A stretch of DNA of 64,000 nt from Octopus sinensis (taxonomy: Eukaryota): the NCBI RefSeq assembly GCF_006345805.1, contig NW_021832227.1:186001-250000 (forward strand). The letters run 5' to 3'. This document shows, in pieces, positions 1 through 43,013 of the stretch (positions are counted from its first letter, which is position 1; the number at the start of each line of letters is the position of its first letter). A program made the position numbers and the translations under genes. Under the pieces are notes generated by a model. The model did no database searches and was not told where the DNA came from. It saw only the letters and a list, made by a program, of their open reading frames with translations.

Positions 1-362
1 ATTGACATTTAATTTCTCCAAACATTTTTCGAAGGCAATATTGGTAATATTTATCATATATATGTTTTTCAGCTGTATCGAGTTTCCATCTTTTACCTGA
101 TCTAAATATGAATGTTGAAAAATTAGAAATCCCGGTTAATCTTAATTAAAGTTAATTTCAAAATGAGCAAACTACAATAACATGAATCATCTTCCAAATT
201 TTAAATTATTTTTTAAACAATTAAATTAAAATATAATTAAATAATTAAAACTCACAGAAATTATATTCCAATTACATTTCCTGCTATTACTAAGTAATTA
301 GTAAATTTCTTTTTTTTACAATTTTTAACAAGTTCGAGTGTTAATTAAGTGAATTTATGATG

Positions 363-1243
363 TTAATTCTTTAATTGAGAGGACGCGCCAATAGATAGGC
401 AGTTTTCGCGCAATATCGCAAGCGAAATGCGCTGAAAAAGCCAGCTAGACTCACTTCTCTTGTGACTTTTCTTCGAGATCATCAAACCGATTTCTAAAAG
501 GAACCCCAGGGCTTTCGGGCCGATTATCCCACTCGTCTCGAAAGCCAGGGGGACGAAAAGGCAGGTGTTCTCCAATGAGGCGTACTTTGCGATTTTTTTC
601 GTTTCGGCATGTGCGGAAGCTGAGCCAGGGCGGGACGCGGAGTCGATGAGAGATGACGAGGAAAACGAGTCGACACAGGTCACGTCCCAAACGAGAGCGA
701 GTCCCCCCTTGAACGGGAATAGCGGGGACCCATCGGGACGTTTTCCGTCACCACGGTCTAACCCAACCGGCTCCAGGACCAAAGGAAATCCTGCGGCGTT
801 GAGCGCGCGCTTAACAATATCGTTTAAGGTGGCATGTCTGGGTATACGGCCGGCACTGAGGCGACAAGAGAGGGGGTGTAGCCCTCTCCTGTCAATGGCT
901 TTAGGCAGATATCTTCGAGTGTATAAGAACAATGTATCTCATCCCAGTTCTTTTGAACTGAGGGGACGTCCGGGATTTCAAGCCCACGAGAAATCCACAT
1001 GTTGACACCTGCCGCATATTCCGACAACTCGGGCTGTTCAGAGAAGGGGTAGAGAACAGAGTTGACAAAACTAGCGGAAGCAGACAACGAGGAAAGGTAA
1101 CATGGGAAGAATAAATCTCCACAAGAACGAATGCCGATGCCCCCGTAACGAATAGGTAAATTAACCCGTCGCATGTCTGAAGGTTTGAATTTGATATTTA
1201 CGAGGAGCTCAAGAGTTTTGGAGACCATGTTGTCGAGACGGTA
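363..1243 (-). mobile_element. 5'-truncated, internally deleted CRE-clade non-LTR retrotransposon (RT thumb + RLE endonuclease)
   Basis: GC-rich island. LPIRYGGIGIR, LHPLSC...RH..LND, RPDG, WDVTC, AE.KK..KY, ETSG and WLFQRISLAILR motifs align with the 911-aa ORF at 45656; frame change and missing segment near 900. Confidence 0.9.
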
Positions 1244-1376
1244 AATTTCTTAGATTTAATAAAGAAAAAATCTAATAATTATTTAAATTAAACGTATTTA
1301 TTCGTTTAATTAAATTCTATTCTAAAATAAAAATTTTTTATTTCATCATCATATTACACGTGCATTTAATCCACCA

Positions 1377-4300
1377 ATGAACGGTTCTACTATTTTTTCG
1401 CGTTTGTCAAAAGATGTATTTCCTCAAAGTTATCAACTCTCATTAAAAATTGACACTGAAAAAGATGTTTTTACAGGCAATGTCACGATCGCAGTGACGG
1501 TAAATATTTAAATATAAACAATTTTGACAGATTATTGCTTTAGACACTCCACAAATAATGCTCCACTCAAATTGCCTTGATATTCAACAAGTTTTAGTAA
1601 ATCAAGGTAATTAGAAAAATCCAATTTCAGATAATGAAATTGACGTTTCGGTCAAATTTTCTGTTAATGAAGAATCTCAGATACTTACAATAAATTGCCC
1701 ACAACTAGTAAAATATATTCAATATAATAGAAAATTGGACGTGCTCAAATCAAAATTAAATACAACGGGCAAGTAAATAAGCAATTATTTGGGTTGTACC
1801 GAACTACGTACAAGTACGAAGGAAGAACAATTCGAGGTGTGGCTACCGATTTTGAGGCAAGTTGAGGATTGACAGTTCATTAGACCACAAATGCTAGAAT
1901 GGCTCTCCCATGTTTTGATGAGCCAGAATTCAAAGCAGTTTTTACTCTGTCAATTATAACTCGAAAAAACCAGACTGTTCTCTCAAATACGGTTTTTTAA
2001 TATTTATACTAATTTTTAAGGATATTTGTAAAACGGAGACTTGGCTAAATGAAAATAATGACGATTTTGTGATGACTTCATTCGAACCTACACCTCCCAT
2101 GTCGACATACCTGCTTGCGATTGTTGTGGGAGAATACGACTATATTGAGGACTTTTCATCCAGTGGAGTTAAAGTCAGGGTTTATACTGGCCCCGGAAGG
2201 CAAGAGGAGGGTCGATTTGCTTTGAAAGTGATCATTTTCAGACATTTTAGATCGCTTGTCGTGCAATTGACTTTTATACTGATTTTTTTAAATATCCTTG
2301 CGTGATGAAGAAATGTGACTTGATTGCCGTTGCGGACTTTGCTTTTTGTTTGTTTTTTGTACTTTAACCTTTCAGCCGCAATGGAGAACTGGGGGTTGGT
2401 GATTTTCCGTGAAACAGCACTTTTGGCCACGGAAGGGATTTCCTCGACGAATATCCTCAACCGAGTGGCCGTCGTTGTAGCCCACGAGATTGCCCATACG
2501 TGGTTCGGGAATTTGGTTACAATGGACTGGTGGACTTATTTGTGGCTCAACGAGGGATTTGCCACATGGATTTCATATTTGTGTGTTGACAATATTTTCC
2601 CCGAGTACGACATTTGGTCTCAATTCCAAATAAACGAGATCTCCGTGGCAATGAATTTGGATTCCTTGCAAAGCAGTCACCCAATCGAGATCGAAATTGG
2701 AGCTCCTTCAGAGGCAGATGAGATATTTGACAAAATATCATACGCCAAAGGATCTTCCATAATAAGCTATCTCTACGAGTATATTGGCGACACGGTAAAT
2801 CACGGAATTCCGTAGTTTTAGAAATTCCGTGAAGGAATGAGATTGTATATATCTCGACATGAGTTTGGAAACACAACATCCTCTGATTTGTGGACTGCAT
2901 TGCAACAAGTGACTTGTGTGGATATCGGGGAAATTATGCGCTGTTGGATATCCCGGAAAGGATTTCCGTACCTTACGGTTGTCCCTCAATTTTCACGATA
3001 GGTTTCCCAACTTTCGACCACCGACAGTAACTCAGAATCAGTTTATAGAGCAGAATCAGTGTATTAGAGGAAATGGTTTTTAGCAGTTTTTTTTATATTA
3101 GACGAGTCGTTTTTATGGAAGGTCCCGTATAATTTAATCCAGGAATCATTCCCGACCAATCCGTCCAAATTTTTTTTGAAAGACAAAAAGGAAATAATTA
3201 CGATCAAATCAAGTAGAGACGAATGGATTAAAGTAATAAAAATGTTGTATTTTTAGTTCAACGCTGGAAATGGGGGGTTTTATCGAGTTAAGTACGTCGG
3301 GGCACTGAAGGATCTTATAATCAGTGCCTCGTCGAATTTGTCGGTAAGGGACAGAGTTGGACTTTTGACGGACTTTTTGTTTTTGGTTTGTATACTAATG
3401 GAATTATGACATTAGGCTAACATTGGAGAAATGTCTTTGGTTGATGGACTTGGACTCTGTTGGAATCTCCGCAATACGACAAACTATAATATTTGGCTGA
3501 GCATATATAATATCATATCGATTGTTGGTTTGTTTGTTCAAGACACTGAATCTTGTAATCCATTTCGGGAATTCGTGGTACAACTGGTTAAAGTACCATA
3601 TGAAAGTGTTGGATGGACGGTTGTTAAGAGCGAAGGGATTTTTAAGCAGAGTAAAAACTCTAGATTGCTCAATTTCTATGTTGAGGACACTCATATTTGG
3701 AATTCTGGCCAAATTTGGTCCAATTGAATTCCAAAATCGTTGTCGAGATGCATTTAACTGGATTGTTGAAGGAATACCAGTCCATGCGGATCTTCAGACT
3801 GCAATTTTGCAGTCAGTATTACTGAATGGAACAGACCGATTTGACGATTTGAACAAAATCCTCACGTGCTATAGAAACGCTGAACTTGGCGAAGAAAAAG
3901 CCCGTATTTTGTCGTGTTTAGGATTCGTACAAGACAGAGAACTTGTTGATTATGTTTTGAAATTTGCTGAATCCGTATATTTATGTATTTTTACTGTAAC
4001 AGGAAGAGGTTAAGGGACAAGATTATTTCTACGTTTTTTCTGGGTTTTCAGGGACGAAATGGAGTTCTTGGATTGTCTGGGAATATTACAAAGCAAATTA
4101 CGACAAAATATCAGAGAAAGTGACTTCTACCAAACTAATAACCAACATTTTACAGGTAATTTTGAGTATTTTGATTTAAAGTTTGTGACTGCGCAGTTTA
4201 ATACTGCAGGGGAAATTGAGGATATGAAGGTTTTGAGGGTTTTTATTTATGATTAGAAATTTTTCTCGAGTTTTAACACGAAAATTATTGAGATGGCTGT

Positions 4301-4391
4301 GAGTCAGAATATTGAATGGGCAGAAGTAAGAAAATGTGTTTGTGAAGAAAATTACGGTTCTGTCAATGACTATATGACACAGTTTAATTAA
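1377..4391 (+). CDS. NPEPPS: M1 family aminopeptidase (puromycin-sensitive aminopeptidase-like), multi-exon, copy 1
   Basis: After removing 22-31 nt introns: ATDFETTNARMALPCFDEP, DFAFSAMENWG, HEIAH...NEGFA (HEXXH-18x-E), YAKG and an ERAP1-like C-terminus; ATG 1377, TAA 4389-4391. Confidence 0.88.
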
Positions 4392-4829
4392 CTTTGTTTC
4401 TTTATCGGTTTCATTTTTGTTGAAAAAATGTTATTTTGTGTATTTATATTGTTAAATATGTTTAGAAAAAATATGTTATTTGATCTTGAGACTTGTTAAT
4501 TACATTTTTAATTGGTTAATAAATTCCGATGAGTAAACACGACAGTAATATCAAATAGACTTGAATCAATTTTTGTGAGAATTTTACATTTATATGACAG
4601 CAAATTTTTGCTGTCAACAATAAAAGTTGAATGCTTTCCTGAATCAAGTTCATCAAAGTCGTTGGAATTGTCAATAGTCTGAGAGGACTCCTGGTCCATT
4701 TTAATTCCGCCCAACATTCTTATTAGTGGTCATTCTTATTACTGGAGTGTTACGCAAATATTTTTTCTAGTATCGAGGAATGTTAAAATCTCATAATTCG
4801 TTCACAGAAGAATCAAAAATTATTATATT

Positions 4830-5030
4830 TTAGTAAATAAATTCGCCAAATCTTTTGAGTTTGATTTCTTCGGCGTCGTAAGAGCGACTATCAAGTTCGT
4901 AGTTTTTAAATTTTTGAACAAACGGTGAATATTTATCAATCGAGTCATTCATCAAAAAGAGTGTATTTTCTCTATTTTGAGTTGAGATGGGCACAAAATA
5001 GAAAGATAAAAATAAAAATAGCAGAAGCAT
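4830..5030 (-). CDS. Putative small secreted orphan protein
   Basis: Hydrophobic signal-like N-terminus MLLLFLFLSFYFVPIST; the second copy (21647-21835) differs by an in-frame 12-nt indel. No family recognised. Confidence 0.3.
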   Translation of the reverse strand: MLLLFLFLSFYFVPISTQNRENTLFLMNDSIDKYSPFVQKFKNYELDSRSYDAEEIKLKRFGEFIY

Positions 5031-5382
5031 ACTCAACACGTCAGCAAATGCTGTAAGAGTTGCGCAATAACATTTATATGAAAAGAACTGGTTTCTGAGA
5101 TTTCCGATAAAGATTCCTTGTTTATTATATATTGAAAATGATCACAAAAGTGACTTTATTTAGCAAAAGATTATTTTAAAGACACATAAATAAACAGAAA
5201 TCATGCCATTTAGTTGCCTTATTGTTTTAATCCAATTAAAAAAATAAAACCTGTTATCAGTTTTTTAGTTTTGATTTTTTAAAATCTATTTAATAACTAA
5301 AACAATTTTAAATAAATAAACACGATAATATTTGATTTACGTGATTTTTACGTGTTGACCAATACATTTAAAAATTATAGAA

Positions 5383-7897
5383 ATGTCAATCTCACGAAAT
5401 AATCAAACCTATGAAATAAACTCCGATCAAAAATATCGCGTTTTCGTTAACTTACTGGACGATTCAACCGTAAGTCTAGACATTCACAATCACACATTGG
5501 GACTAAATATCCTCGAGAGTGTGTGTCGTCATATTGGAATTCCAACTGTATATATATTGAATAAATTCAAGACAATTTATTTTTCATTCCGATTTCTGGA
5601 CAAGGATGGCCAATCTCGTTTCATTAGATTAGACAAACCTGTTATAAAACAGCTTAAAACGAGCCTCAGTCCTCAAAAAATAATTTTTTCAGTCTTTTAT
5701 TACTCGATCCAAACAGTTTTTGAACAGCATTTCTTGTTAAATTATTTTGATTATTTTAGTGACCAATTTTTCCTCCAATTAAACCGGAACTACTTAAAAT
5801 GCAACTTGGGACTAGAAAAATCAGAAATAACTTTTCTTACGAGTTGTTTAGTCCACAGTTTGTGATTTGACTGAATTTACTAACAGAAATTAGTTTTCCT
5901 AGCTACAAATCCCTCCTATGAGCTCAAGGACTCGTTGATTGTTTCATTTCTGCCAAATTTCCTCAAAAAATATTCACATTATTTTTATATTTCTCGAGTC
6001 ATCAACGAACTTTCTTTAATTTCTAAAATGTCATTAAAGGATGTCAAAAAATCGTTTATGGAGACAATGGTCAGCCTCCCTCACTACGGGACTGAATTTT
6101 TTCCCGCCAGAATTAATGTTGAGTTTATTGATATCATTCTTAATAGGACAGATTGGTCTCACTAGGCATATCAAGTGAGCACGTGGTATTGTGTAGTAAT
6201 TCTCATTCAAAATCATTCAAGTGTGACATTTTTTAATCATTTTAGATGGGCGGGAGTTTCCTGTGTTAAAAATTTAGGACATTCAGTTGTTTTTTACATG
6301 CACGATTCCACAATAACGTTTATTTTTGTATGATTTTTTGCTAATTAAAAGGCCTCTCAAAGCTTAGCAAAGTACATTGGCTGGCTCTCAGCAGAAATCG
6401 GTCGATTTCAGATTTAGTAAGAATTTTATTTTTTATTTTTATATAGCGATTGTTTTTACATTTCCAATGGAATAGTTCCTGAGAAGTATTTTATGGGATT
6501 TATACTTTTAGAATCCCCGAAAACTGTTGTAATATCAATTCTCCAAAAGTTGAAAAGTCTCGGAACAGTTTTAAAGACAGTCGTGAAAATTTGGCGGAAA
6601 AGTAATTTTTATAATCACCGAAAGTCCGTCGGGACCAGAAAATCGACAATTTATAACTTCATCTTTGAAAAAATTGAAATCGATGGGCAAAAATATTTTA
6701 AAAAAATCAAATACAAGCATAAATCAGCTTACTTTGAAGAAGTCTCGGGATTTGCCTCATCCCTTTGTTCAGTCTTACAGTTTTGAAGGAAGTTTAAAAC
6801 CGCCTCCCGTCGATTCAGACTCCGAGCAACTTGAAAATACCGTTTTTAGTATAAAATTTATTTTAGTCCCATTTGTCGATCTGGGGGCCTTTTACAGCCA
6901 GTGTTTTGTGTGGTATGGCCTGGAATCCTCCAATTGATATTAAAAAACTTACATGTGAAGGAATCCTCCCCCAAACACAGGTTTTTTCAAGTTTGACTAA
7001 TTTTTGCCTAGAAAATTGGCTGTGTGGCCAAAAAACGTTATAAGCCTCGAGCAACTGAATTTCTTTCGATTTACCCACAGCTGGCGACCATTTTTCGGGA
7101 TGCCAAAAAGCGGGAGAACGAAGGTCTGAATAACGACCCTCGTGTACTGCCATACGACCACAATCACGTGGAAGTACCCTGGAGTCAGCGGAACCCGGGT
7201 GGATACCAAAATGCCTCGTTTGTACGTCTGAGTGTCCAAAATGTGGTTCTTGATTTTATCGTGGCCCAAAACCCCAAATTTCCTAACGATTTTTGGAATA
7301 TGGTTTGGCGTGAGAAGGTCGGTCTTATAATGTGTCTCGATGATGGTCAGATGGATTATATTCCATCGCTAAAGAACTCCGAATTTGATATCGTACTTAT
7401 ATACTGTGCATGATAGGTATCTGTGACTTTGAGACATCAATATGACTGGAAGAGCTGTTTGGCACGTCAACTTGCTGTTGAGGTTGAAGGACAGTTTCGT
7501 ACTGTTTGGCAGCTTGTATATCATGATTGGTCTCCGAATGGGACTCCTGCGTCACTTGACCAATATCTTGGTACAATTTATTGTGATATGATTAGATTTT
7601 ATGGACGAGGTTGACTCTCTAAGGGAGGCTCAGTCTGGGAAGGATTTGAGTGGAGTTTTAGTACACTGTTCCAATGGAGCTGGGAAATCTGGACTGCACG
7701 TATTTTTGGAATTTTGTAAAATATTCATTGACAATTCCTTGGTTTATTTCCTCATTAAAATTGTACAGGAAGTGGACTATATGTCTATTTTACATTGCAT
7801 AAGAAAGCAACGTATGATGGCTGTCACATCTCTGGCTCAATATTTGTTCGCAATTGATTTTGTCGATAACTATCAACTTAAATCATTCTGTGTTTGA
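5383..7897 (+). CDS. FERM-domain protein tyrosine phosphatase (PTPN14/PTPN21/Pez-like), predicted catalytically degenerate, copy 1
   Basis: N-terminal FERM (VNLLDD...VCRHIGI...YFSFRF, FFLQL, LPHYGTEFF) and C-terminal PTP (VLPYD, FIVAQNP, DFWNMVW, RTVWQL, VHCSNGAGKSG, IRKQRM) join in one frame using GT-AG introns of about 23-36 nt. Confidence 0.85.
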
Positions 7898-8157
7898 ATA
7901 ATTAGTTATTTGTTACTTCCTATGTAAAATCATGCCTAGTGGTACATGTAGTGTATTTAAATTATAAAAAATTTATTTGCGAAAATATCTGAGAAACGCT
8001 CATCTTATTTTGTGGGATTGTATAAGACCAAAATACCACAAAAATATTTAAAAACCACCAATTTATCGGATTAAACAGCAATAAAAACAGTCAAAATCTA
8101 TCACCAATGTATAAACAAATATAAATCAGGAGAATGTAGTCGCTCAATGGGCCAAAT

Positions 8158-8763
8158 CTACATTTTTAAAACAAAATTAAACCATTTTGGTATGAGTTTA
8201 GGCCAGTCGTTTCCAACTGAGTAATCCTGACAGGAACTCGCGAGATATGAATCGTTAATAAAGTCGTCTGTGAATCCTCCACTCTAAAAATCACACAAAA
8301 ATCAATAACCGGCTTATCTCTCAAATAAATGCATTTTCTATAAATACACGATTGCTTCAGCACTTTCCGTTTAAGACAGTTTTTGCAATTATTGCAGTTC
8401 TGCTTGACATTGCACGGCCCACACTGCCCACATCGCTTCCTTCTTTGGCTTCTAACTTTTGGAAATGGCTGTGTGCCAGGAAAGTGGCCAAAATCTGACT
8501 GCATTGATGCAAGATAATTCTCAGAATGTACCACTTTTGAATTTGGAATGACCAATTTCTTTTCTGGAATGGCCTTGTTCTCATTTTGGCAGGGCTTTGG
8601 TGGCTCAAATGGGCCATATTTGTCAATCAATGTCCCAAGTCCATGAAAATTCCCACTTGAGGGGAGAATATCCAACAAATTGAGAGTTTTGCATTCGTGA
8701 TAAAGCTTTGGAGGCTCAATGTGTGTTCGGACAAAGTTAGAAATCGGCTCATCAGCCTTTGAG
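8158..8763 (-). pseudogene. CXXC zinc-finger gene, 5'-truncated copy
   Basis: Matches 24960-25565 but lacks the ATG, about 24 N-terminal codons and the upstream region, which are replaced by a CRE RT fragment. Confidence 0.75.
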
Positions 8764-16058: not shown

Positions 16059-16843
16059 CTAATTTAAAAAAGAAACCCTTTTTTGAATACTTGAAAGATT
16101 CTTCCAAAAACGTGAACACTTCTTTAAAGACAGAAAAGGTGAAATTGGCAGATTGACATAATAAAAGAGAGTCAACCCATACATTTCCAACACATCAACA
16201 AAACCAAACATCTCTAAAGACAACATTTCAGTCAAAATTTGATGCCGAACTTTTCTTTGATCTCCATTCAAAATACTACGCCTGACTGATATTCAATAAA
16301 AAAAGCGCCAAAACAAACCGAGATGAAAATTTCCAGCAGAAATCATCTCCGACTCCCATTTCCGAACCAAAGAAGAGGAATTGAGTGAATACTGAGAGAC
16401 AACTCGGTAGTAACCAGTTTTTTGAGAAGAACTGAGATCTTTGAACATATTCATTGCTGACTTGAAACAGGTCTAAACTCAAAATGACTAAAAATACATC
16501 TGGTTTGTATGAAAGCAAATCCTGGGAAAATATTTTTACAGAATTGGGAAAATCGTTTGGAATTTTGTGCTCTTTTTGGAGATTTCTGATGATTTTTTTG
16601 CAGTTTTTCTCAATGATTTGTTTGGGTCTGAACAAGACTGGTTTACTTTTGATTAAAATGTGATTTTGAGTTAAATTATTAAAATAACTATTCGTATATT
16701 GCTATAAATATTCATTATTTTTGGACCAATTTTGCTGAATCGACAAGTTGGCAGGTCTGAGTAAAAGATACAAAATCTGGCGGAGATGATATTTTAGGGA
16801 CTAAAAATTAAAAAATAAATTGACATTTAATTTCTCCAAACAT
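16059..16843 (-). CDS. HMG-box protein, TFAM-like (5' end uncertain, may extend to about 17010)
   Basis: Spliced reading gives KIPNDFPNSVKIFSQD...MFKDLSSSQKTGYY...RKWESEMISAGNFHLVRRSI, resembling TFAM HMG2 plus its tail (WEEQMIEVG..DLLRRTI). Confidence 0.5.
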
Positions 16844-17180
16844 TTTTCGAAGGCAATATTGGTAATATTTATCATATATATGTTTTTCAGCTGTATCGAG
16901 TTTCCATCTTTTACCTGATCTAAATATGAATGTTGAAAAATTAGAAATCCCGGTTAATCTTAATTAAAGTTAATTTCAAAATGAGCAAACTACAATAACA
17001 TGAATCATCTTCCAAATTTTAAATTATTTTTTAAACAATTAAATTAAAATATAATTAAATAATTAAAACTCACAGAAATTATATTCCAATTACATTTCCT
17101 GCTATTACTAAGTAATTAGTAAATTTCTTTTTTTTACAATTTTTAACAAGTTCGAGTGTTAATTAAGTGAATTTATGATG

Positions 17181-18061
17181 TTAATTCTTTAATTGAGAGG
17201 ACGCGCCAATAGATAGGCAGTTTTCGCGCAATATCGCAAGCGAAATGCGCTGAAAAAGCCAGCTAGACTCACTTCTCTTGTGACTTTTCTTCGAGATCAT
17301 CAAACCGATTTCTAAAAGGAACCCCAGGGCTTTCGGGCCGATTATCCCACTCGTCTCGAAAGCCAGGGGGACGAAAAGGCAGGTGTTCTCCAATGAGGCG
17401 TACTTTGCGATTTTTTTCGTTTCGGCATGTGCGGAAGCTGAGCCAGGGCGGGACGCGGAGTCGATGAGAGATGACGAGGAAAACGAGTCGACACAGGTCA
17501 CGTCCCAAACGAGAGCGAGTCCCCCCTTGAACGGGAATAGCGGGGACCCATCGGGACGTTTTCCGTCACCACGGTCTAACCCAACCGGCTCCAGGACCAA
17601 AGGAAATCCTGCGGCGTTGAGCGCGCGCTTAACAATATCGTTTAAGGTGGCATGTCTGGGTATACGGCCGGCACTGAGGCGACAAGAGAGGGGGTGTAGC
17701 CCTCTCCTGTCAATGGCTTTAGGCAGATATCTTCGAGTGTATAAGAACAATGTATCTCATCCCAGTTCTTTTGAACTGAGGGGACGTCCGGGATTTCAAG
17801 CCCACGAGAAATCCACATGTTGACACCTGCCGCATATTCCGACAACTCGGGCTGTTCAGAGAAGGGGTAGAGAACAGAGTTGACAAAACTAGCGGAAGCA
17901 GACAACGAGGAAAGGTAACATGGGAAGAATAAATCTCCACAAGAACGAATGCCGATGCCCCCGTAACGAATAGGTAAATTAACCCGTCGCATGTCTGAAG
18001 GTTTGAATTTGATATTTACGAGGAGCTCAAGAGTTTTGGAGACCATGTTGTCGAGACGGTA
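17181..18061 (-). mobile_element. CRE-clade 3' fragment (duplicate of 363-1243)
   Basis: All overlapping ORFs translate identically to copy 1. Confidence 0.9.
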
Positions 18062-18194
18062 AATTTCTTAGATTTAATAAAGAAAAAATCTAATAATTAT
18101 TTAAATTAAACGTATTTATTCGTTTAATTAAATTCTATTCTAAAATAAAAATTTTTTATTTCATCATCATATTACACGTGCATTTAATCCACCA

Positions 18195-21100
18195 ATGAAC
18201 GGTTCTACTATTTTTTCGCGTTTGTCAAAAGATGTATTTCCTCAAAGTTATCAACTCTCATTAAAAATTGACACTGAAAAAGATGTTTTTACAGGCAATG
18301 TCACGATCGCAGTGACGGTAAATATTTAAATATAAACAATTTTGACAGATTATTGCTTTAGACACTCCACAAATAATGCTCCACTCAAATTGCCTTGATA
18401 TTCAACAAGTTTTAGTAAATCAAGGTAATTAGAAAAATCCAATTTCAGATAATGAAATTGACGTTTCGGTCAAATTTTCTGTTAATGAAGAATCTCAGAT
18501 ACTTACAATAAATTGCCCACAACTAGTAAAATATATTCAATATAATAGAAAATTGGACGTGCTCAAATCAAAATTAAATACAACGGGCAAGTAAATAAGC
18601 AATTATTTGGGTTGTACCGAACTACGTACAAGTACGAAGGAAGAACAATTCGAGGTGTGGCTACCGATTTTGAGGCAAGTTGAGGATTGACAGTTCATTA
18701 GACCACAAATGCTAGAATGGCTCTCCCATGTTTTGATGAGCCAGAATTCAAAGCAGTTTTTACTCTGTCAATTATAACTCGAAAAAACCAGACTGTTCTC
18801 TCAAATACGGTTTTTTAATATTTATACTAATTTTTAAGGATATTTGTAAAACGGAGACTTGGCTAAATGAAAATAATGACGATTTTGTGATGACTTCATT
18901 CGAACCTACACCTCCCATGTCGACAAACCTGCTTGCGATTGTTGTGGGAGAATACGACTATATTGAGGACTTTTCATCCAGTGGAGTTAAAGTCAGGGTT
19001 TATACTGGCCCCGGAAGGCAAGAGGAGGGTCGATTTGCTTTGAAAGTGATCATTTTCAGACATTTTAGATCGCTTGTCGTGCAATTGACTTTTATACTGA
19101 TTTTTTTAAATATCCTTGCGTGATGAAGAAATGTGACTTGATTGCCGTGGCCGACTTTGCTTTTTGTTTGTTTTTTGTACTTTAACCTTTCAGCCGCAAT
19201 GGAGAACTGGGGGTTGGTGATTTTCCGTGAAACAGCACTTTTGGCCACGGAAGGGATTTCCTCGACGAATATCCTCAACCGAGTGGCCGTCGTTGTAGCC
19301 CACGAGATTGCCCATACGTGGTTCGGGAATTTGGTTACAATGGACTGGTGGACTTATTTGTGGCTCAACGAGGGATTTGCCACATGGATTTCATATTTGT
19401 GTGTTGACAATATTTTCCCCGAGTACGACATTTGGTCTCAATTCCAAATAAACGAGATCTCCGTGGCAATGAATTTGGATTCCTTGCAAAGCAGTCACCC
19501 AATCGAGATCGAAATTGGAGCTCCTTCAGAGGCAGATGAGATATTTGACAAAATATCATACGCCAAAGGATCTTCCATAATAAGCTATCTCTACGAGTAT
19601 ATTGGCGACACGGTAAATCACGGAATTCCGTAGTTTTAGAAATTCCGTGAAGGAATGAGATTGTATATATCTCGACATGAGTTTGGAAACACAACATCCT
19701 CTGATTTGTGGACTGCATTGCAACAAGTGACTTGTGTGGATATCGGGGAAATTATGCGCTGTTGGATATCCCGGAAAGGATTTCCGTACCTTACGGTTGT
19801 CCCTCAATTTTCACGATAGGTTTCCCAACTTTCGACCACCGACAGTAACTCAGAATCAGTTTATAGAGCAGAATCAGTGTATTAGAGGAAATGGTTTTTA
19901 GCAGTTTTTTTTATATTAGACGAGTCGTTTTTATGGAAGGTCCCGTATAATTTAATCCAGGAATCATTCCCGACCAATCCGTCCAAATTTTTTTTGAAAG
20001 ACAAAAAGGAAATAATTACGATCAAATCAAGTAGAGACGAATGGATTAAAGTAATAAAAATGTTGTATTTTTAGTTCAACGCTGGAAATGGGGGGTTTTA
20101 TCGAGTTAAGTACGTCGGGGCACTGAAGGATCTTATAATCAGTGCCTCGTCGAATTTGTCGGTAAGGGACAGAGTTGGACTTTTGACGGACTTTTTGTTT
20201 TTGGTTTGTATACTAATGGAATTATGACATTAGGCTAACATTGGAGAAATGTCTTTGGTTGATGGACTTGGACTCTGTTGGAATCTCCGCAATACGACAA
20301 ACTATAATATTTGGCTGAGCATATATAATATCATATCGATTGTTGGTTTGTTTGTTCAAGACACTGAATCTTGTAATCCATTTCGGGAATTCGTGGTACA
20401 ACTGGTTAAAGTACCATATGAAAGTGTTGGATGGACGGTTGTTAAGAGCGAAGGGATTTTTAAGCAGAGTAAAAACTCTAGATTGCTCAATTTCTATGTT
20501 GAGGACACTCATATTTGGAATTCTGGCCAAATTTGGTCCAATTGAATTCCAAAATCGTTGTCGAGATGCATTTAACTGGATTGTTGAAGGAATACCAGTC
20601 CATGCGGATCTTCAGACTGCAATTTTGCAGTCAGTATTACTGAATGGAACAGACCGATTTGACGATTTGAACAAAATCCTCACGTGCTATAGAAACGCTG
20701 AACTTGGCGAAGAAAAAGCCCGTATTTTGTCGTGTTTAGGATTCGTACAAGACAGAGAACTTGTTGATTATGTTTTGAAATTTGCTGAATCCGTATATTT
20801 ATGTATTTTTACTGTAACAGGAAGAGGTTAAGGGACAAGATTATTTCTACGTTTTTTCTGGGTTTTCAGCGACGAAATGGAGTTCTTGGATTGTCTGGGA
20901 ATATTACAAAGCAAATTACGACAAAATATCAGAGAAAGTGACTTCTACCAAACTAATAACCAACATTTTACAGGTAAATTTGAGTATTTTTATTTAAAGT
21001 TTGTGACTGCGCAGTTTAATACTGCAGGGGAAATTGAGGATATGAAGGTTTTGAGGGTTTTTATTTATGATTAGAAATTTTTCTCGAGTTTTAACACGAA

Positions 21101-21209
21101 AATTATTGAGATGGCTGTGAGTCAGAATATTGAATGGGCAGAAGTAAGAAAATGTGTTTGTGAAGAAAACTACGGTTCTGTCAATGACTATTTGACACAG
21201 TTTAATTAA
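18195..21209 (+). CDS. NPEPPS: M1 aminopeptidase, copy 2
   Basis: Same exon structure as 1377-4391 with few substitutions (e.g. Y>N in MSTY). Confidence 0.88.
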
Positions 21210-22184
21210 CTTTGTTTCTTTATCGGTTTCATTTTTGTTGATAAAATGTGATTTTGTGTATTTATATTGTTAAATATGTTTAGAAAAAATATGTTATTTG
21301 ACCTTGAGACTTGTTAATTACATTTTAATTGGTTAATAAATTCCGATGAGTAAACACGACAGTAATATTAAATAGACTTGAATCAATTTTTGTTGGAATT
21401 TTACATTTATATGACAGCAAATTTTTGCTGTCGACAATAAAAGTTGAATGCTTTCCTGAATCAAGTTCATCAAAGACGTTGAAATTCTCAATAGTCTGAG
21501 AGGACTCCTGGTCCATTTTAATTCCGCCCAACATTCTTATTAGTGGTCATTCTTATTACTGGAGTGTTACGCAAATATTTTTTCTAGTATCGAGGAATGT
21601 TAAAATCTCATAATTCGTTCACAGAAGAATCAAAAATTATTATATTTTAGTAAATAAATTCGCCAAATCTTTTGAGTTTGATTTCTTCGGCGTCGTAAGA
21701 GCGACTATCAAGTTCGTAGTTTTTAAATTTTTGAACAAACAATGAATATTTATTCATCAAAAAGAGTGTATTTTCTCTATTTTGAGTTGAGATGGGCACA
21801 AAATAGAAAGATAAAAATAAAAATAGCAGAAGCATACTCAACACGTCAGCAAATGTTGTAAGAGTTGCGCAATAACATTTATATGAAAAGAACTGGTTTC
21901 TGAGATTTCCGATAAAGATTCCTTGTTTATTATATATTGAAAATGATCACAAAAGTGACTTTATTTAGCAAAAGATTATTTTAAAGACACATAAATAAGC
22001 AGAAATCATGCCATTTAGTTGCCTTATTGTTTTAATCCAATTAAAAATAAAACCTGTTATCAGTTTTTTAGTTTTGATTTTTTAAAATCTATTTAATAAC
22101 TAAAACAATTTTAAATAAATAAACACGATAATATTTGATTTACGTGATTTTTACGTGTTACCAATGCATTTAAAAATTATAGAA

Positions 22185-24699
22185 ATGTCAATCTCACGAA
22201 ATAATCAAACCTATGAAATAAACTCCGATCAAAAATATCGCATTTTCGTTAACTTACTGGACGATTCAACTGTAAGTCTAGACATTCACAATCACACATT
22301 GGGACTAAATATCCTCGAGAGTGTGTGTCGTCATATTGGAATTCCAACTGTATATATATTGAATAAATTCAAGACAATTTATTTTTCATTCCGATTTCTG
22401 GACAAGGATGGCCAATCTCGTTTCATTAGATTAGACAAACCTGTTATAAAACAGCTTAAAACGAGCCTCAGTCCTCAAAAAATAATTTTTTCAGTCTTTT
22501 ATTACTCGATCCAAACAGTTTTTGAACAGCCTTTCTTGTTAAATTATTTTGATTATTTTAGTGACCAATTTTTCCTCCAATTAAACCGGAACTACTTAAA
22601 ATGCAACTTGGGACTAGAAAAATCAGAAATAACTTTTCTTACGAGTTGTTTAGTCCACAGTTTGTGATTTGACTGAATTTACTAACAGAAATTAGTTTTC
22701 CTAGCCACAAATCCCTCCTATGAGCTCAAGGACTCGTTGATTGTTTCATTTCTGCCAAATTTCCTCAAAAAATATTCACATTATTTTTATATTTCTCGAG
22801 TCATCAACGAACTTTCTTTAATTTCTAAAATGTCATTAAAGGATGTCAAAAAATCGTTTATGGAAACAATGGTCAGCCTTCCTCACTACGGGACTGAATT
22901 TTTTCCTGCCAAAATTAATGTGGAGTTTATTGATATCATTCTTAATAGGACAGATTGGTCTCACTAGGCATATCAAGTGAGCACGTGGTATTGTGTAGTA
23001 ATTCTCATTCAAAATCATTCAAGTGTGACATTTTTTAATCATTTTAGATGGGCGGGAATTTCGTGTGTTAAAAATTTAGGACATTCAGTTGTTTTTTACA
23101 TGCATGATTCCACAATAACGTTTATTTTTGTATGTTTTTTTGCTAATTTAAAGGCCTCTCAAAGCTTAGCAAAGTACATTGGCTGGCTCTCAGCAGCAAT
23201 CGGTCGATTTCAGATTTAGTAAGTATTTTATTTTTTATTTTTATATAGCGATTGTTTTTACATTTCCAATGGAATAGTTTCTGAGAAGTATTTTATGGGA
23301 TTTATACTTTTAGAATCCCCGAAAACTGTTGTAATATCAATTCTCCAAAAGTTGATAAGCCTCGGAACAGTTTTAAAGACAGTCGTGAAAATTTGGCGGA
23401 AAAGTAATTTTTATAATCACCGAAAGTCCGTCGGGACCAGAAAATCGACAATTTATAACTTCATCTTTGAAAAAATTGAAATCGATGGGCAAAAATATTT
23501 TAAAAAAATCAAATACAAGCATAAATCAGCTTACTTTGAAGAAGTCTCGGGATTTGCCTCATCCCTTTGTTCAGTCTTACAGTTTTGAAGGAAGTTTAAA
23601 ACCGCCTCCCGTCGATTCAGACTCCGAGCAACTTGAAAATACCGTTTTTAGTATAAAATTTATTTTAGTCCCATTTGTCGATCTGGGGGCCTTTTACAGC
23701 CAGTGTTTTGTGTGGTATGGCCTGGAATCCTCCAATTGATATTAAAAAACTTACATGTGAAGGAATCCTCCCCCAAACACAGGTTTTTTCAAGTTTGACT
23801 AATTTTTGCGTAGAAAATTGGCTGTGTGGCCAAAAAACGTTATAAGCCTCGAGCAACTGAATTTCTTTCGATTTACCCACAACTGGCGACCATTTTTCGG
23901 GATGCCAAAAAGCGGGAGAACGAAGGTCTGAATAACGACCCTCGTGTACTGCCATACGACCACAATCACGTGGAAGTGCCCTGGAGTCAGCGGAACCCGG
24001 GTGGATACCAAAATGCCTCGTTTGTACGTTTGAGTGTCCAAAATGTGGTTCTTGATTTTATCGTGGCCCAAAACCCCAAATTTCCTAACGATTTTTGGAA
24101 TATGGTTTGGCGTGAGAAGGTCGGTCTTATAATGTGTCTCGATGATGGTCAGATGGATTATATCCCATCGCTAAAGAACTCCGAATTTGATATCGTACTA
24201 ATATACTGTGCATGATAGGTATCTGTGACTTTGAGACATCAATATGACTGGAAGAGCTGTTTGGCACGTCAACTTGCTGTTGAGGTTGAAGGACAGTTTC
24301 GTACTGTTTGGCAGCTTGTATTTCATGATTGGTCTCCGAATGGGACTCCTGCGTCACTTGACCAATATCTTGGTGCAATTTATTGTGATATGATTAGATT
24401 TTATGGACGAGGTTGACTCTCTAAGGGAGGCTCAGTCTGGGAAGGATTTGAGTGGAGTTCTAGTACACTGTTCCAATGGAGCTGGGAAATCTGGACTGCA
24501 CGTATTTTTGGAATTTTGTAAAATATTCATTGACAATTCCTTGGTTTATTTCCTCATTAAAATTGTACAGGAAGTGGACTATATGTCTATTTTACATTGC
24601 ATAAGAAAGCAACGCATGATGGCTGTCACATCTCTGGCTCAATATTTGTTCGCAATTGATTTTGTCGATAACTATCAACTTAAATCATTCTGTGTTTGA
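22185..24699 (+). CDS. FERM-PTP (PTPN14/21-like), copy 2
   Basis: Same structure as 5383-7897; same HCSNGAGKSG motif. Confidence 0.85.
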
Positions 24700-24959
24700 A
24701 TAATTAGTTATTTGTTACTTCCTATGCTAAATCATGCCTAGTGGTACATGTAGTGTATTTAAATTATAAAAAATTTATTTGCGAAAATATGTGAGAAACG
24801 CTCATCTTATTTTGTGGGATTGTATAAGACCAAAATACCACAAAAATATTCAAAAACCACCAATTTATCGGATTAAACAGCAATAAAAACAGTCAAAATC
24901 TATCACCAATGTATAAACAAATATAAATCAGGAGAATGTAGTCGCTCAATGGGCCAAAT

Positions 24960-25636
24960 CTACATTTTTAAAACAAAATTAAACCATTTTGGTATGAGTT
25001 TAGGCCAGTCGTTTCCAACTGAGTAATCCTGACAGGAACTCGCGAGATATGAATCGTTAATAAAGTCGTCTGTGAATCCTCCACTCTAAAAATCACACAC
25101 AAATCAATAACCGGCTTATCTCTCAAATAAATGCATTTTCTATAAATACACGATTGCTTCAGCACTTTCCGTTTAAGACAGTTTTTGCAATTATTGCAGT
25201 TCTGCTTGACATTGCACGGCCCACACTGCCCACATCGCTTCCTTCTTTGGCTTCTAACTTTTGGAAATGGCTGTGTGCCAGGAAAGTGGCCAAAATCTGA
25301 CTGCATTGATGCAAGATAATTCTCAGAATGTACCACTTTTGAATTTGGAATGACCAATTTCTTTTCTGGAATGGCCTTGTTCTCATTTTGGCAGGGCTTT
25401 GGTGGCTCAAATGGGCCATATTTGTCAATCAATGTCCCAAGTCCATGAAAATTCCCACTTGAGGGGAGAATATCCAACAAATTGAGAGTTTTGCATTCAT
25501 GGTAAAGCTTTGGAGGCTCAATGTGTGTTCGGACAAAGTTAGAAATCGGCTCATCAGCCTTTGAGGACGAGAGAGAGTCTCTCAGTAATTCAATATAAGG
25601 GATTCTTATGCAAAGAGAAGGACGTGATTGAGTCAT
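24960..25636 (-). CDS. Stand-alone CXXC zinc-finger protein (CXXC4/5-IDAX or TET-type CXXC)
   Basis: RKRCGQCGPCNVKQNCNNCKNCLKRKVLKQSCIYRKC: eight cysteines, no KFGG motif; one 26-nt GT-AG intron after KP. Confidence 0.8.
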
Positions 25637-29388: not shown

Positions 29389-32300
29389 TCATTTGATCAT
29401 ATCGAAATAAATCCGTGTTTGATCAAGGAAACACACACATAGCCGACTATCTAGTTTCCATTCAATTGATAAGACCACTTTCTCTGGCAGTTGATGCACC
29501 ATAACAATATGGAAAACACGATTTGTAAACATCATATAAGAGTTTTCTGTTTTCCACAACACAATTTTATTAGTTTCGCCAGAGAATGAGACAAAGCTTA
29601 GACCATCAAGTGAAAAATGAATAATATCAACAGTCCCATCATGACCAGTGACAGAAGTGAGCCGATCCCTCGCCATATCAAGAAACGTTACTTTCCCATT
29701 TGATAACCCCACTGCAAGAATTTTTAATTTTTCGTTCCATGCGAGACGAGTGAAATCCTTCAAGCAAGGGAATGACTCATAAAAAGGGACCTTTCTGTAT
29801 ATATTGTAGATAAATGCCAAAATATTAATAAAATCAATAATCATTTCATTTTGTTTCCAAATTGAATTAAGGGAAATTATATTTATTATTAATTTTATTC
29901 CAGAAGCGCAAAAAATCATTTCGTTTTCATTTTTTTTAATTTCTCGAATTACGGCAGTAATAAAAACGAGAGGCCTTATATAAACAATGTTTTTGAGGGA
30001 AATTATGGCAAATTCTTTTTTAAAACGACGAGATTTCTGGTCGAAAAATTGATTAGAGACAATTTTCTGTTTAAGATGAGCAATTTTTAGCATTTTGATG
30101 ATAAGGCGTGTTACAGGAATATAATGCTCGATTGAAATAAAACATTTTCCAACAATGCTAAGAGCAAACTGAATATTAACTGATTCTTCCTTAGAAGAAA
30201 TGATACCCCAAAATAATCTGCTAAATTTTATAATAATTTCACGAAATTCATCTCCAGATGACAAACTATCAACATATCCAGTCGGCATGTGGGCAATAAC
30301 AAATCCAAAAAGAAGCCCGTTTTCTTCAGAAGGGTTTTTTGAGTATTCGACAGCATAATGTTCAATTGCATTTTTAGAATCAGCATCAATGATCATTTGT
30401 GTCAACTTAGTTGAAACTGTCCGAATGATGACTGAAGGATGCTGAGATAAATATGATAAGAAAACTAAACATTCCAGTCCACGAGGAATTGATGATCCAA
30501 TGATATAATTTACTGAATTTGAAACGTCTTCTTTATGATACAACACAATTATCATCGATGTACGAATTATTATCATAGTACATTGTTGGCTGGAATCAAG
30601 CTGTGAAAAATCTGAAGAAATCAATATTTGAAGGCACTTAAATCCACTAAACAGGCACAAAGAACATGAATTATTCTCTTCGTTTATAATTTTCAAATAG
30701 ATTTTTGCAACATTTTCAATTCTGGATTGGGAATCAGCTTGTTTAGATAACAAAAAAATAAGCAACTCGACTTGGAATATAATGACAATCCAGTCCACAG
30801 TCCCCATAGGACTATATACTGTTCTCACAACAACATAAGAACTTAACGATTTCGGATTATGCTCGAATAAAGCAAATAAATCCTGCTCATGATGTGCAGA
30901 ATACCACAAATAACTTATGTGATCACTCAGAAACGGCACAAGAGGTGACTTAAGGTCCTCTAACTTGTGGGAATTAGAAATGACTTTATCCAGATATCCT
31001 CCACTGATATTCCAAGCATAAACAATATTTTGTGAGCAAAAAACATATAGATATTCAATATCAGGCCGACAATGAACAGATAAAACTGTTCTTTCATGAT
31101 GGGCAGAAAAAATACACTCAGACCGGTCAAGCAAGGCAACAGAATTATCTTCTCCAATAGCACACACTTTGTTATGCAATAGGCAGAGAGAATCGGTCAC
31201 TTCAAGACAACTCAAAGACATAATTCCACCTCCATTGCAGTATAATCTGCAAATAAATGTTCCATCAATTAAATCGTGGATAGAAATTGACATGTCTTGC
31301 CCTCCGCTGAAGAGGAGTACAGATTTTTGGTCTTTTCCGTGATTTCCAGACGACAAAAGACAAGTAACATCACCGATATGAGCCTTTGGAAAATATAATT
31401 TATATTTAATGCTATCTGGAAGTTCCAAAAATGTAGAAAAGCCATAGAAGCAGGCTATCGAGCCATCTCGGCATCCACAAACGATATAATCGAGTCCAAA
31501 ATCGTAGATGAGACAAGTAATAAAAGTATTTTTGATATCAAACTGTGAAGGAATCGACTTGTATTCAACTTTAACAGTTTCAGTAATCTCAAATTCGCAG
31601 AAATCACCCAAATATAATTCAGAATCATTTAAATAGCACAAATTAAAACTGGAATGGATATATTTCCCTGAAAACTGTATCGACTTTTTGTGTAAATATT
31701 GTTCGTTTTCAACGTCCAAGAAAAATTGTAAAACAACCCCGTCATCGTAGAAAATGAACAAATCTAAATTATTGTTTATTTTTGTATTAATCAATTGAAA
31801 ATCCTCTAATCTGGTATCGAATTGAAAAACTAATTTTCCACAAAAATAATCTCTGACTTGAACAAAATGGCAAAAGCAAATTAAAATATAAATCTTTGAT
31901 CCTTGATAAAGGAAATTTATCATAAAATTTTCATTCAAGTTTTCTAAAACAAAAGAACATTCCAAAGGCTTTTTACTCAAGTCATAGATAGTCCACCACC
32001 AAAGGGAACTCGATGTGACTGTTGCTATTATTACAGAAGATTTGTGAATAAAATAACTCGAAGTTTTGAGTGCTGTAATCGAATCTTCCACAGGAAGAAT
32101 GTGCAAGGGTGTAAGAGTAGAATAATTCATTATTAAGACGAAAGAATACAAACCATGGCAAATCACGAGACTTTCGTCGTTTTCCAAAGAAAGTTGTTTC
32201 TTATTTACGAATGAAAATGCCGTATGTTTTATATTTTGAAATGACCTGCAGAGACACGTTACTGATTGTACTTTTAAGGACCATGCTATAAGTTCGGAAT

Positions 32301-32589
32301 CATTTGAAAAAGATAGAAAGCAATCATCAGATAAGCCATTCCAGCCCGTCCCTATTTCGATGATACAGGACGTGTGTCCATAAAACACAGAACTGAGAGT
32401 AAACAAACTTTGACGAGAATAAATAAGTATCAAGCCAGAAGTAGAACATAAGACCAAATATCCTGATTTCGACAAACAGCCACATACAATTTTGATATAT
32501 TTTGTGTCAAAACCATTGATTGGAATTGCAAGTGACTGATTTAATAATTTTCCATTATCGTGCTTTAATTCCGTCATTCCTAAATACAC
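29389..32589 (-). CDS. WDR7: WD40-repeat protein, rabconnectin-3 beta/WDR7-like (intronless)
   Basis: 1066-aa ORF; N-terminal NQSLAIPING, GCRDGSI, AHIGDVTCLL..LLFSGGQD, LYCNGGGI, CHCRPD..YLYV and C-terminal GHDG.V...FSLDG repeats. Confidence 0.75.
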   Translation of the reverse strand: MYLGMTELKHDNGKLLNQSLAIPINGFDTKYIKIVCGCLSKSGYLVLCSTSGLILIYSRQSLFTLSSVFYGHTSCIIEIGTGWNGLSDDCFLSFSNDSELIAWSLKVQSVTCLCRSFQNIKHTAFSFVNKKQLSLENDESLVICHGLYSFVLIMNYSTLTPLHILPVEDSITALKTSSYFIHKSSVIIATVTSSSLWWWTIYDLSKKPLECSFVLENLNENFMINFLYQGSKIYILICFCHFVQVRDYFCGKLVFQFDTRLEDFQLINTKINNNLDLFIFYDDGVVLQFFLDVENEQYLHKKSIQFSGKYIHSSFNLCYLNDSELYLGDFCEFEITETVKVEYKSIPSQFDIKNTFITCLIYDFGLDYIVCGCRDGSIACFYGFSTFLELPDSIKYKLYFPKAHIGDVTCLLSSGNHGKDQKSVLLFSGGQDMSISIHDLIDGTFICRLYCNGGGIMSLSCLEVTDSLCLLHNKVCAIGEDNSVALLDRSECIFSAHHERTVLSVHCRPDIEYLYVFCSQNIVYAWNISGGYLDKVISNSHKLEDLKSPLVPFLSDHISYLWYSAHHEQDLFALFEHNPKSLSSYVVVRTVYSPMGTVDWIVIIFQVELLIFLLSKQADSQSRIENVAKIYLKIINEENNSCSLCLFSGFKCLQILISSDFSQLDSSQQCTMIIIRTSMIIVLYHKEDVSNSVNYIIGSSIPRGLECLVFLSYLSQHPSVIIRTVSTKLTQMIIDADSKNAIEHYAVEYSKNPSEENGLLFGFVIAHMPTGYVDSLSSGDEFREIIIKFSRLFWGIISSKEESVNIQFALSIVGKCFISIEHYIPVTRLIIKMLKIAHLKQKIVSNQFFDQKSRRFKKEFAIISLKNIVYIRPLVFITAVIREIKKNENEMIFCASGIKLIINIISLNSIWKQNEMIIDFINILAFIYNIYRKVPFYESFPCLKDFTRLAWNEKLKILAVGLSNGKVTFLDMARDRLTSVTGHDGTVDIIHFSLDGLSFVSFSGETNKIVLWKTENSYMMFTNRVFHIVMVHQLPEKVVLSIEWKLDSRLCVCFLDQTRIYFDMIK

Positions 32590-38027: not shown

Positions 38028-38863
38028 TTAATCGCAGATGTTTCTGACATCAGGAACGTGCTCTGACTCAGATTCGGTTTCAGATGCACTAATTTTCTCC
38101 AAATCATCGACAGAATTTATCAACGTGACATTATTCTCTCCCGAATTCTCAACTTTCGAACCAGAAACGTCTAACGGGGACGAATTTTTTCTTTTTGAAG
38201 CCTCACGTGAGGGAGAATTACTATTTCTCATCATTTCATTCAAAAATACAGATTTATGACATCCTCTATCAATTCAAGTTTTCTCCCGTTCAAATCATAT
38301 CCATTAAACTTATCTTTTGCTGCCTTCAAGTCAGCTTGTGACCAAAATTCCACAATTCTGTTGAACTAACATCAACTATGAGCCGACCCTGAATTTACGA
38401 CGGGTCTGTGAGCATCGACAAAGGAGACACTGGCCACGTTACTCATGAGTTCCCTCAAATCCTTATACATAGTACGAATAATAAAATACTAATTAAGACT
38501 ATAATTCCTATTCTACGCTGCAGCACAATTATCACCTGCCAACTCACACCACTGGAGAGATTGTTCACAATTAGTCTGTGGGACGTCCGTTTGACAGGAG
38601 GGCTGGGAATGACAAGATTTATCTTACCGTTGATAGTTTTGTCTTGTAGAACGAGCATAGTCCAAACGGAGTCTTTTGCCGAGAATTTCCTTTCCGTTGA
38701 GTCTTTGAATTGCCTTTTCTGCGTCGCGGCTTCTTTTAAATTCAACAAAGGCATATCCGGTCTTTAAATTGACATGCACAATTGATCCAGAATTACGGAA
38801 AAAATGGTCAATGTCACGTTCACGTGTATTGCTTGGTAAATTTCCAACATAAATCCGAGACAT
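38028..38863 (-). CDS. SRSF4/5/6-like splicing factor (two RRMs, no RS domain)
   Basis: MSRIYVGNL...GYAFVEF...LNG (RRM1); HRLIVNNLSSGVSWQDLRE...DAHR...VEF (SR-type RRM2); four GT-AG introns; acidic Ser-rich tail. Confidence 0.88.
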
Positions 38864-42753: not shown

Positions 42754-43013
42754 ACATAATAATTATAACCAAATAGAATTTTATTGTGAAAATAGCATGG
42801 TTGTGTAATGTTAGAAGTTATTGTTGACAACTGTATTCTCATATCAGCATTGAGTTTATCTTGTATTGATTGCAGTGAAACCTCTCTAATTTGCCACCTC
42901 TATGATTTGCCACTCTCCTTTTTTACAGAAAAATTGAAATTCTGTAAATTCAAAAAACCAGAAAATTCAATAAATTTAATTATTCTATATATTCATACAA
43001 CCAAACTTTGTGA

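Follow-up and report, generated by a model that had tools for sequence, protein, structure and literature searches.

In a 64,000-nt stretch of the Octopus sinensis genome assembly (GCF_006345805.1, contig NW_021832227.1, positions 186,001 to 250,000 of the forward strand; hereafter the window), we found an M1 aminopeptidase gene of the puromycin-sensitive aminopeptidase (PSA) type that is present in two copies and whose reading frame is interrupted at the same place in both. As judged from homology and gene structure, it is certain or nearly so that positions 3636-3663 are a real mini-intron at an ancestral position, with the donor GG in both copies. Among the splicing models for the locus, a predicted 28-nt intron that begins with GG is far superior to all others, and its sole abnormality is the G at +2. 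On the reading that we tentatively favor, it is a genuine mini-intron of the U2 type that goes back to the PSA gene of the animal ancestor, with G rather than T as its second base here. The GG would then be a T-to-G donor lesion in a recently disabled PSA gene that was later duplicated or homogenized in tandem, and intron retention would let the frame run into the TGA at 3725, with loss of the C-terminal domain. The features of this locus are as follows.

Positions 1377 to 4391, plus strand: PSA-like M1 aminopeptidase gene, copy 1, with about 17 tiny introns, defined by alignment to human PSA.
Positions 18195-21209: PSA-like M1 aminopeptidase gene, copy 2.
Positions 3416 to 3635, plus strand: upstream exon, ending ...VGWTVVKSE plus G.
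Positions 3636 to 3663, plus strand: candidate mini-intron of copy 1, 28 nt, GG...AG, phase 1, dividing an Asp codon (G/AT).
Positions 3664 to 3974, plus strand: downstream exon, beginning AT/TGC, (D)CSISMLRTLIFG...
Positions 3725 to 3727, plus strand: premature TGA if the 28 nt are retained, with about 215 C-terminal residues lost.
Positions 20454 to 20481, plus strand: candidate intron of copy 2, identical by direct sequence comparison.

Once its tiny introns are removed, the aminopeptidase aligns end to end with human PSA (PDB 9o5k, 8sw0; E 2e-172). If nothing is removed at this locus, the reading frame of ...VKVPYESVGWTVVKSE ends at the TGA at 3725-3727; CSISMLRTLIFG...KFAES is read in the +1 frame, where no stop occurs from 3501 to 4010. 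A preliminary description of the window had proposed that a +1 shift is needed here to avoid a stop at 3727, and such a shift is indeed required in both copies. The 28 nucleotides in question read GGATTTTTAAGCAGAGTAAAAACTCTAG. Their removal gives GWTVVKSEDCSISMLR, which is ungapped against human PSA (E 2e-172) with the frame restored, in agreement with the proposed PSA match; the sequence of copy 2 likewise bears out the proposed identity of the 28 nt at 20454-20481. The spacing from the conserved Trp to the conserved Arg after removal is 13 residues, a value shared by 56 of 72 homologues (78%). These 72 full-length homologues were used to build a subfamily hidden Markov model (HMM), and the Pfam profile ERAP1_C was used for the same region. 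In an unconstrained scan of all deletions of 1-70 nt, the top 18 by homology were all 28 nt long, and among the boundaries that yield the top-scoring product only 3636-3663 has an AG end (subfamily HMM 912.0). A gene-finder trained on the window and limited to GT donors broke the aminopeptidase precisely at 3636-3663 and at 1857-1883.

The 28 nt also resemble the introns of this genome. An intron model was trained on 67 non-redundant GT-AG introns taken from the window, using length, positions +3 to +8 and -10 to -3, the flanks, and composition. The model disregards the first dinucleotide, and percentiles were obtained by leave-one-out. The candidate scored 6.4 bits, which is the 58th percentile of true introns; this score was reached by eight of 5834 NN..AG decoys in coding sequence (0.14%). 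Among the 24 NN..AG options that restore the frame at the locus, none other than the candidate scored above 1.2. The AG 3′ end, the length (28 nt vs. a training range of 21-33), and the composition (GC 0.32 vs. 0.24 ± 0.09) are those of an ordinary intron, and the 5′ end is not GT in either copy. Except for +2, the features are usual for this genome: AT-rich, ATTT at +3 to +6, AAG/ at the exon end, and TAG/ as acceptor.

The strongest new evidence of descent comes from an intron position shared with a mollusc. The best-scoring homologue of the aminopeptidase is a protein of the mollusc Babylonia areolata (XP_076459328.1), and the intron positions of its gene were examined individually by pattern search. 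The two genes compare as follows (introns in lower case).

Babylonia: ...GGC TGG GAG TGG GAT GAG GAA TCT GAC AGG CAA G/gtagcg...ggcag/AT CAC GGG GAT TCC AGA CTG CGA
Window: ...GGA TGG ACG GTT GTT AAG AGC GAA G/ggattt...ctctag/AT TGC TCA ATT TCT ATG TTG AGG

The GT-AG intron of Babylonia agrees with the candidate in site, in phase (phase 1), and in the Asp codon divided as G/AT, seven residues before a conserved Arg. Because position, phase, and split codon are shared, the 28 nt are an intron by descent. Two further introns of the aminopeptidase (2978-3001 and 3076-3101) match Babylonia in position and phase; at the position of the GC-AG intron 1857-1883, the Babylonia gene has no intron.

The preliminary description had weighed a 13-nt and a 58-nt intron with GT donors and a 34-nt intron with a GC donor against the candidate. 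All three do score lower, but its list left out four GT options. The +1 frame has no stop from 3501 to 4010, so that an open reading frame (ORF) also results from GT-AG introns at 3608-3635, 3606-3630, 3620-3635, and 3593-3635. The scores of all options, named by donor and length, are given below.

GG28, positions 3636-3663: ERAP1_C 199.3 bits, subfamily HMM 904.1 bits.
GC34, positions 3630-3663: ERAP1_C 195.6 bits, subfamily HMM 895.9 bits.
GT13, positions 3651-3663: ERAP1_C 194.7 bits, subfamily HMM 897.0 bits.
GT16, positions 3620-3635: ERAP1_C 192.6 bits, subfamily HMM 894.6 bits.
GT43, positions 3593-3635: ERAP1_C 189.5 bits, subfamily HMM 885.9 bits.
GT25, positions 3606-3630: ERAP1_C 188.6 bits, subfamily HMM 891.1 bits.
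GT28, positions 3608-3635: ERAP1_C 185.6 bits, subfamily HMM 891.5 bits.
GT58, positions 3606-3663: ERAP1_C 182.4 bits, subfamily HMM 880.1 bits.

By the subfamily HMM, GG28 is ahead of all alternatives by 7-24 bits, and in the intron model the GT alternatives score -6 to -18 bits and GC34 scores -3.9, compared with +6.4 for the candidate. It is thus very improbable that a cryptic site is used instead, namely GC34, GT13, or GT28. Each of these restores an ORF, and GC donors are used elsewhere in the window. However, they fall 7-13 bits (subfamily HMM) or 3.7-13.7 bits (Pfam) below the candidate, GC34 and GT28 score only -3.9 and -7.2 in the intron model, the 13-nt alternative is shorter than every intron of the window (minimum 21), and none of them lies at the conserved intron position.

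A programmed +1 ribosomal frameshift or a translational bypass, with no intron, deserves even less credence and appears extremely improbable. A +1 shift anywhere within 3617-3663 would keep the ORF. However, such a reading adds nine residues to a loop that has one and the same length in 78% of homologues, and frameshift-only readings cost 8.5-8.9 bits by the subfamily HMM. The shift site has neither a stop nor a known slippery motif, and the 28 nt are intron-like and located at a conserved intron position. We also considered the minor spliceosome. U12-type introns can have non-GT termini, but GGATTTTTAAGCAGAGTAAAAACTCTAG has neither an RTATCCTT donor nor a TCCTTRAY branch box and is far shorter than known U12 introns, so that this assignment was rejected.

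To place the GG donor in context, donors were counted over 11 gene spans with a gene-finder that accepted any of the 16 donor dinucleotides, at a penalty of 6 bits. It returned 88 GT, one GG (3636-3663), one GC (35039-35064), and three non-G donors. The 'donors' AC, TG, AG, AA, AT, and CA proposed by the gene-finder were rejected as artifacts of a narrow length prior or of merged neighboring genes; these places have canonical GT-AG introns, with lengths of 36 nt (5858-5893), 38 nt (59822-59859), and about 74 nt (in an SR-protein gene). The final tally for this single 64-kb sample is about 94 introns: about 91 GT-AG, two GC-AG, one GG-AG, and no GA-AG that is required. GC-AG at about 2% is unremarkable, and a pattern of G-N donors is absent from the tally. 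The two GC-AG introns are listed below.

Positions 1857 to 1883, plus strand: GC-AG intron of the aminopeptidase, GCAAGT...TTAG, 27 nt, in frame with internal stops; copy 2 at 18675-18701.
Positions 35039 to 35064, plus strand: GC-AG intron, 26 nt, with a GCAAAT donor, in a gene similar to mitochondrial glycerol-3-phosphate dehydrogenase (GPD2-like).

The first of these was chosen once non-GT donors were allowed, and its removal gives ATDFE/TTNARMALPCFDEP, ungapped against PSA. The junction of the second aligns ungapped to glycerophosphate oxidase 2rgo. The preliminary description had generalized from GG, GA, and GC cases to a spliceosome that accepts G-N donors. Two GC-AG introns do stand and the GA-AG case is better explained otherwise, and with one GG and no needed GA among about 94 introns the generalization finds no support in the window. 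A second GGATTT...TAG candidate that it had placed at about 16920-16950 lies on the minus strand (16951-16921, 31 nt; copy at 133-103), some 15 nt before the first ATG in the leader of an HMG-box gene; it is non-coding and without support. The motif GGATTT-N19-TAG occurs only at the two aminopeptidase copies, a frequency no higher than chance. A scan of the window with Rfam gave no hits, and thus no small nuclear RNA gene such as U1 or U6 in which to look for compensatory changes; the tRNA scan was also empty.

The window also has a tail of longer GT-AG introns (36, 38, and about 70-90 nt), found at 5858-5893, 59822-59859, about 38461-38535 (minus strand), 35792-35868, and 51439-51527. A narrow length prior makes the gene-finder invent non-canonical introns at such introns.

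The same aminopeptidase has a second frame anomaly about 0.6 kb upstream, in the exon at 3002-3075. The features concerned are as follows.

Positions 2978 to 3001, plus strand: canonical GT-AG intron, 24 nt, phase 0 after GFPYLT, at the position conserved in Babylonia.
Positions 3002 to 3075, plus strand: exon with the frame anomaly, 74 nt, with homology in two frames; copy 2 at 19820-19893.
Positions 3076 to 3101, plus strand: canonical GT-AG intron, 26 nt, phase 1 before (D)ESFLW, at the position conserved in Babylonia.
Positions 3027 to 3048, plus strand: possible 22-nt GT-AG intron, a canonical rescue of the frame that removes the conserved Q-x-R-F strand and leaves exons of 25 and 27 nt.

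Because the flanking introns are conserved in position and phase, the exon must be 3n+1 nt long. The exon between the same introns is 82 nt in Babylonia vs. 74 nt here, which is one base too long. Its start (VSQLSTTD vs. VTERQTSD in the homologue) is in one frame, and its end (TVTQNQF vs. ITQQKF, the conserved Q-x-R-F strand) is in the +1 frame. Three ways of repairing the frame were scored with the subfamily HMM.

Skip of 1 nt around 3023-3027: 918.3 bits.
Non-canonical splice GG2977-AG3001, giving the same mRNA as GT2978-GG3002: 912.0 bits.
Extra canonical 22-nt intron at 3027-3048: 904.6 bits.

This pattern suggests a frameshift inside the exon, as far as sequence comparison can tell. The anomaly is present in both aminopeptidase copies, and no comparable frame repair was needed in about 6000 codons of other genes. 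The region 2977-3027, to which the GA-AG case of the preliminary description probably refers, is better read as the canonical GT-AG intron 2978-3001 with a frame slip of one base in the next exon. The candidates GA-AG 2997-3027 (914.3) and GG-AG 2977-3001 (912.0) are poorly separated by homology, the conserved position is that of GT2978-AG3001, and neither candidate is established.

Apart from these two places, the gene is well preserved. It keeps 73 of 77 near-invariant columns of the family, and the four changes are within the range of real homologues. Its HEXXH motif is unchanged, as are the Glu downstream of it and the catalytic Tyr, and no other stops occur over about 860 codons and about 16 introns. 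The exopeptidase motif GAMEN is SAMEN in the aminopeptidase (window 2345-2392; G in 69 of 72 homologues), and the Ser codon of SAMEN is divided by the intron 2348-2375.

Both gene copies lie within a segmental duplication.

Positions 1 to 8763: segmental duplication, copy 1, containing the aminopeptidase and a FERM-tyrosine-phosphatase gene; copy 2 at 16819-25565.

The duplication spans 8763 bp, and its copies are 99.14% identical (59 substitutions and four indels), with zero differences over 2335-4051 of the aminopeptidase. The divergence is patchy: there are three differences in the first ~4 kb (none in 1-2107 and none in 2335-4051), and about 1.2% from 4052 on. This uneven divergence suggests recent gene conversion or a mosaic origin of the tandem duplication. 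Coding differences between the aminopeptidase copies are three synonymous and three non-synonymous, too few for a ratio of non-synonymous to synonymous rates (dN/dS) or a test of constraint.

The contig that carries these genes is probably dicyemid contamination in the Octopus sinensis assembly. The window is unlike octopus DNA, with 36.5% G+C, elements resembling long interspersed nuclear elements (LINEs), and splice signals reduced to GT[a/t]...AG, and most of its ~94 introns measure 21-33 nt, while a few reach about 90 nt. The dicyemid Dicyema japonicum lives in the kidneys of octopuses. Among animals, tiny introns have been reported only for myxobolid myxozoans and D. japonicum (PMC13644364), and the genome of the latter has 36.7% G+C and is rich in LINEs (PMC6736024). 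The best homologue of the aminopeptidase is a mollusc protein, which agrees with a spiralian source. In an exhaustive protein search, the catalytic exon had a 100% match to XP_036354881.1, annotated as 'puromycin-sensitive aminopeptidase-like protein, partial [Octopus sinensis]' and encoded on VCDQ01001820.1 (GCA_006345805.1); copy 2 carries XP_029655050.1. Word-index and exhaustive phmmer protein searches, together with cluster and contig look-ups, found no other proteins or transcripts of the organism and no other dicyemid PSA, only the two partial RefSeq models.

Several other observations concern the annotation and content of the contig. The Gnomon models XP_036354881.1 and XP_029655050.1 mis-splice tiny introns, and one of them omits an exon and reads into an intron. 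A GC-rich (46-54%) ORF of 921 codons with a reverse-transcriptase domain (RVT_1, E 1.4e-17) is located at 45626-48388 (plus strand), in an island of about 7 kb that is flanked by 236-bp direct repeats (43014-43249 and 50072-50300, 89% identity). Related fragments of its C-terminal part are found at 366-1249, 17184-18067, and 42232-42762, all on the minus strand. An intronless ORF of 1062 codons with WD40/beta-propeller matches is located at 29392-32577 (minus strand), among neighboring genes that have an intron every 100-300 nt. At 56217-63994 (plus strand), there is a putative, very divergent dynein-heavy-chain-like gene with more than 2350 codons and about 30 predicted tiny GT-AG introns, which continues past the end of the window.

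With regard to the meaning of the GG, the second frame defect, found in the same gene and in both copies, means that a donor lesion in a recently disabled gene has to be taken seriously. The other ~93 introns of the window (about 91 GT-AG and two GC-AG) require no other GG or GA donor, and two defects 0.6 kb apart fall in one of about 11 genes. In addition, a 5′ signal that is reduced to GTa would leave little to compensate for the lost T. We tentatively infer that splicing is blocked by the GG and that the locus has lost its function. Several points weigh against this reading. In all other respects the protein has kept its features (73 of 77 columns, motifs intact), so that any inactivation must be very recent. 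The second defect could be rescued by the 22-nt intron 3027-3048 or by GG2977-AG3001, so that the gene could still be expressed. With three synonymous and three non-synonymous differences, the copies offer too little for a test of constraint, and other animals with compact genomes make use of G-N donors (PMC7072748).

The principal competing explanation, which we regard as possible although less probable, is that the GG-AG junction is functional: a dicyemid U2-type spliceosome would excise the 28-nt intron and give a full-length PSA, and it may do the same with GG 2977-3001. In its favor, all features but +2 are normal for the genome (58th percentile), the gene is otherwise intact and well conserved, and the two GC-AG introns indicate that +2 is not absolutely fixed. 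A GG...AG intron at 2977-3001 would also resolve the second frame problem, with an HMM score of 912.0 vs. 904.6 for the canonical rescue, and there is precedent for G-N donors in compact animal genomes (PMC7072748; PMC13326754). However, this is a single clear GG among about 94 introns, and two GG donors in one gene but none in the ~75 introns of other genes would be odd. At 2977, it is the canonical GT2978 that has the conserved position and phase, and homology favors a shift in the middle of the exon. The wider proposition that the dicyemid spliceosome, with a 5′ signal of only about three bases, can still excise introns of 25-28 nt with G at +2, with one at 3636-3663 and possibly a second at 2977-3001, is less likely than not. 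In our view, a recent lesion is a slightly better explanation than a routinely used GG donor.

An artifact of sequencing or assembly is improbable. In this case, the consensus would be wrong at base 3637 and at the extra base in 3002-3075, and assembly would have duplicated the sequence of a low-abundance contaminant in a long-read octopus data set to give the second copy. The presence of the contig in an Octopus sinensis assembly despite its non-octopus gene structure and the identity of the copies over 2335-4051 are consistent with this. However, the 59 substitutions but only four indels over 8.7 kb and the ~6000 codons that need no frame repair argue for a low rate of consensus errors, both errors would have to recur in both copies, and T-to-G is not a typical long-read error.

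Whichever explanation is correct, a 456-kb contig with RefSeq 'octopus' proteins is very probably dicyemid DNA, which matters to users of the assembly. If the GG is a lesion, the two genes are an ordinary young pair of pseudogenes, and their main lesson is that homology by itself is an unsafe guide to non-canonical splicing. If, on the other hand, splicing does use the GG-AG junction, an animal splicing system that is among the most minimal known could do without the +2 uridine, which would bear on how 5′ splice sites are recognized in introns of 20-30 nt. Functional GG introns of 25-28 nt would be shorter than any non-GT/GC intron so far known from an animal.

Compared with known systems, the candidate is best described as a descendant of an ordinary U2-type intron of the ultra-short dicyemid kind. 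Ultra-short spliceosomal introns with medians of 22-27 bp are known from D. japonicum and myxobolid myxozoans (PMC13644364; PMC6543705; PMC6736024), and the 5′ splice signal in such genomes is reported to be reduced to GTa (PMC13644364). The candidate resembles these introns in its 28-nt length, AT-richness, A-run upstream of the AG, and conserved position, and in the reduced GT[a/t]...AG signals of the window, but the introns reported there have GT donors and no GG (PMC13644364; PMC6543705; PMC6736024). In Oikopleura dioica and Eurytemora affinis, U2-type GA-AG and GC-AG introns amount to several percent, with RNA-seq support and conserved flanks (PMC7072748), and Fritillaria has wholesale non-canonical splicing (PMC13326754). 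As in these animals, the candidate keeps G at +1 and an AG acceptor in a compact genome with short introns. Unlike in Oikopleura and Eurytemora, there is a single GG among about 94 introns, no GA, and no recurrence across the genes of the window, and the introns are shorter; if the junction is used, it would be an unusually short addition to the known non-canonical G-N-AG introns. GC-AG is a standard minor variant of U2-type introns; the candidate differs in having G rather than C at +2, and the GC34 option (3630-3663) is a poor fit. Finally, T>G lesions at +2 of splice donors occur in disabled genes and unitary pseudogenes. The candidate is like these in the single-base change within an otherwise normal intron at a conserved position, in the premature stop upon retention, and in the second frame disruption of the gene. 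It is unlike them in that the remainder of the gene is without decay, so that the inactivation would have to be very recent and the loss of function is a matter of inference.

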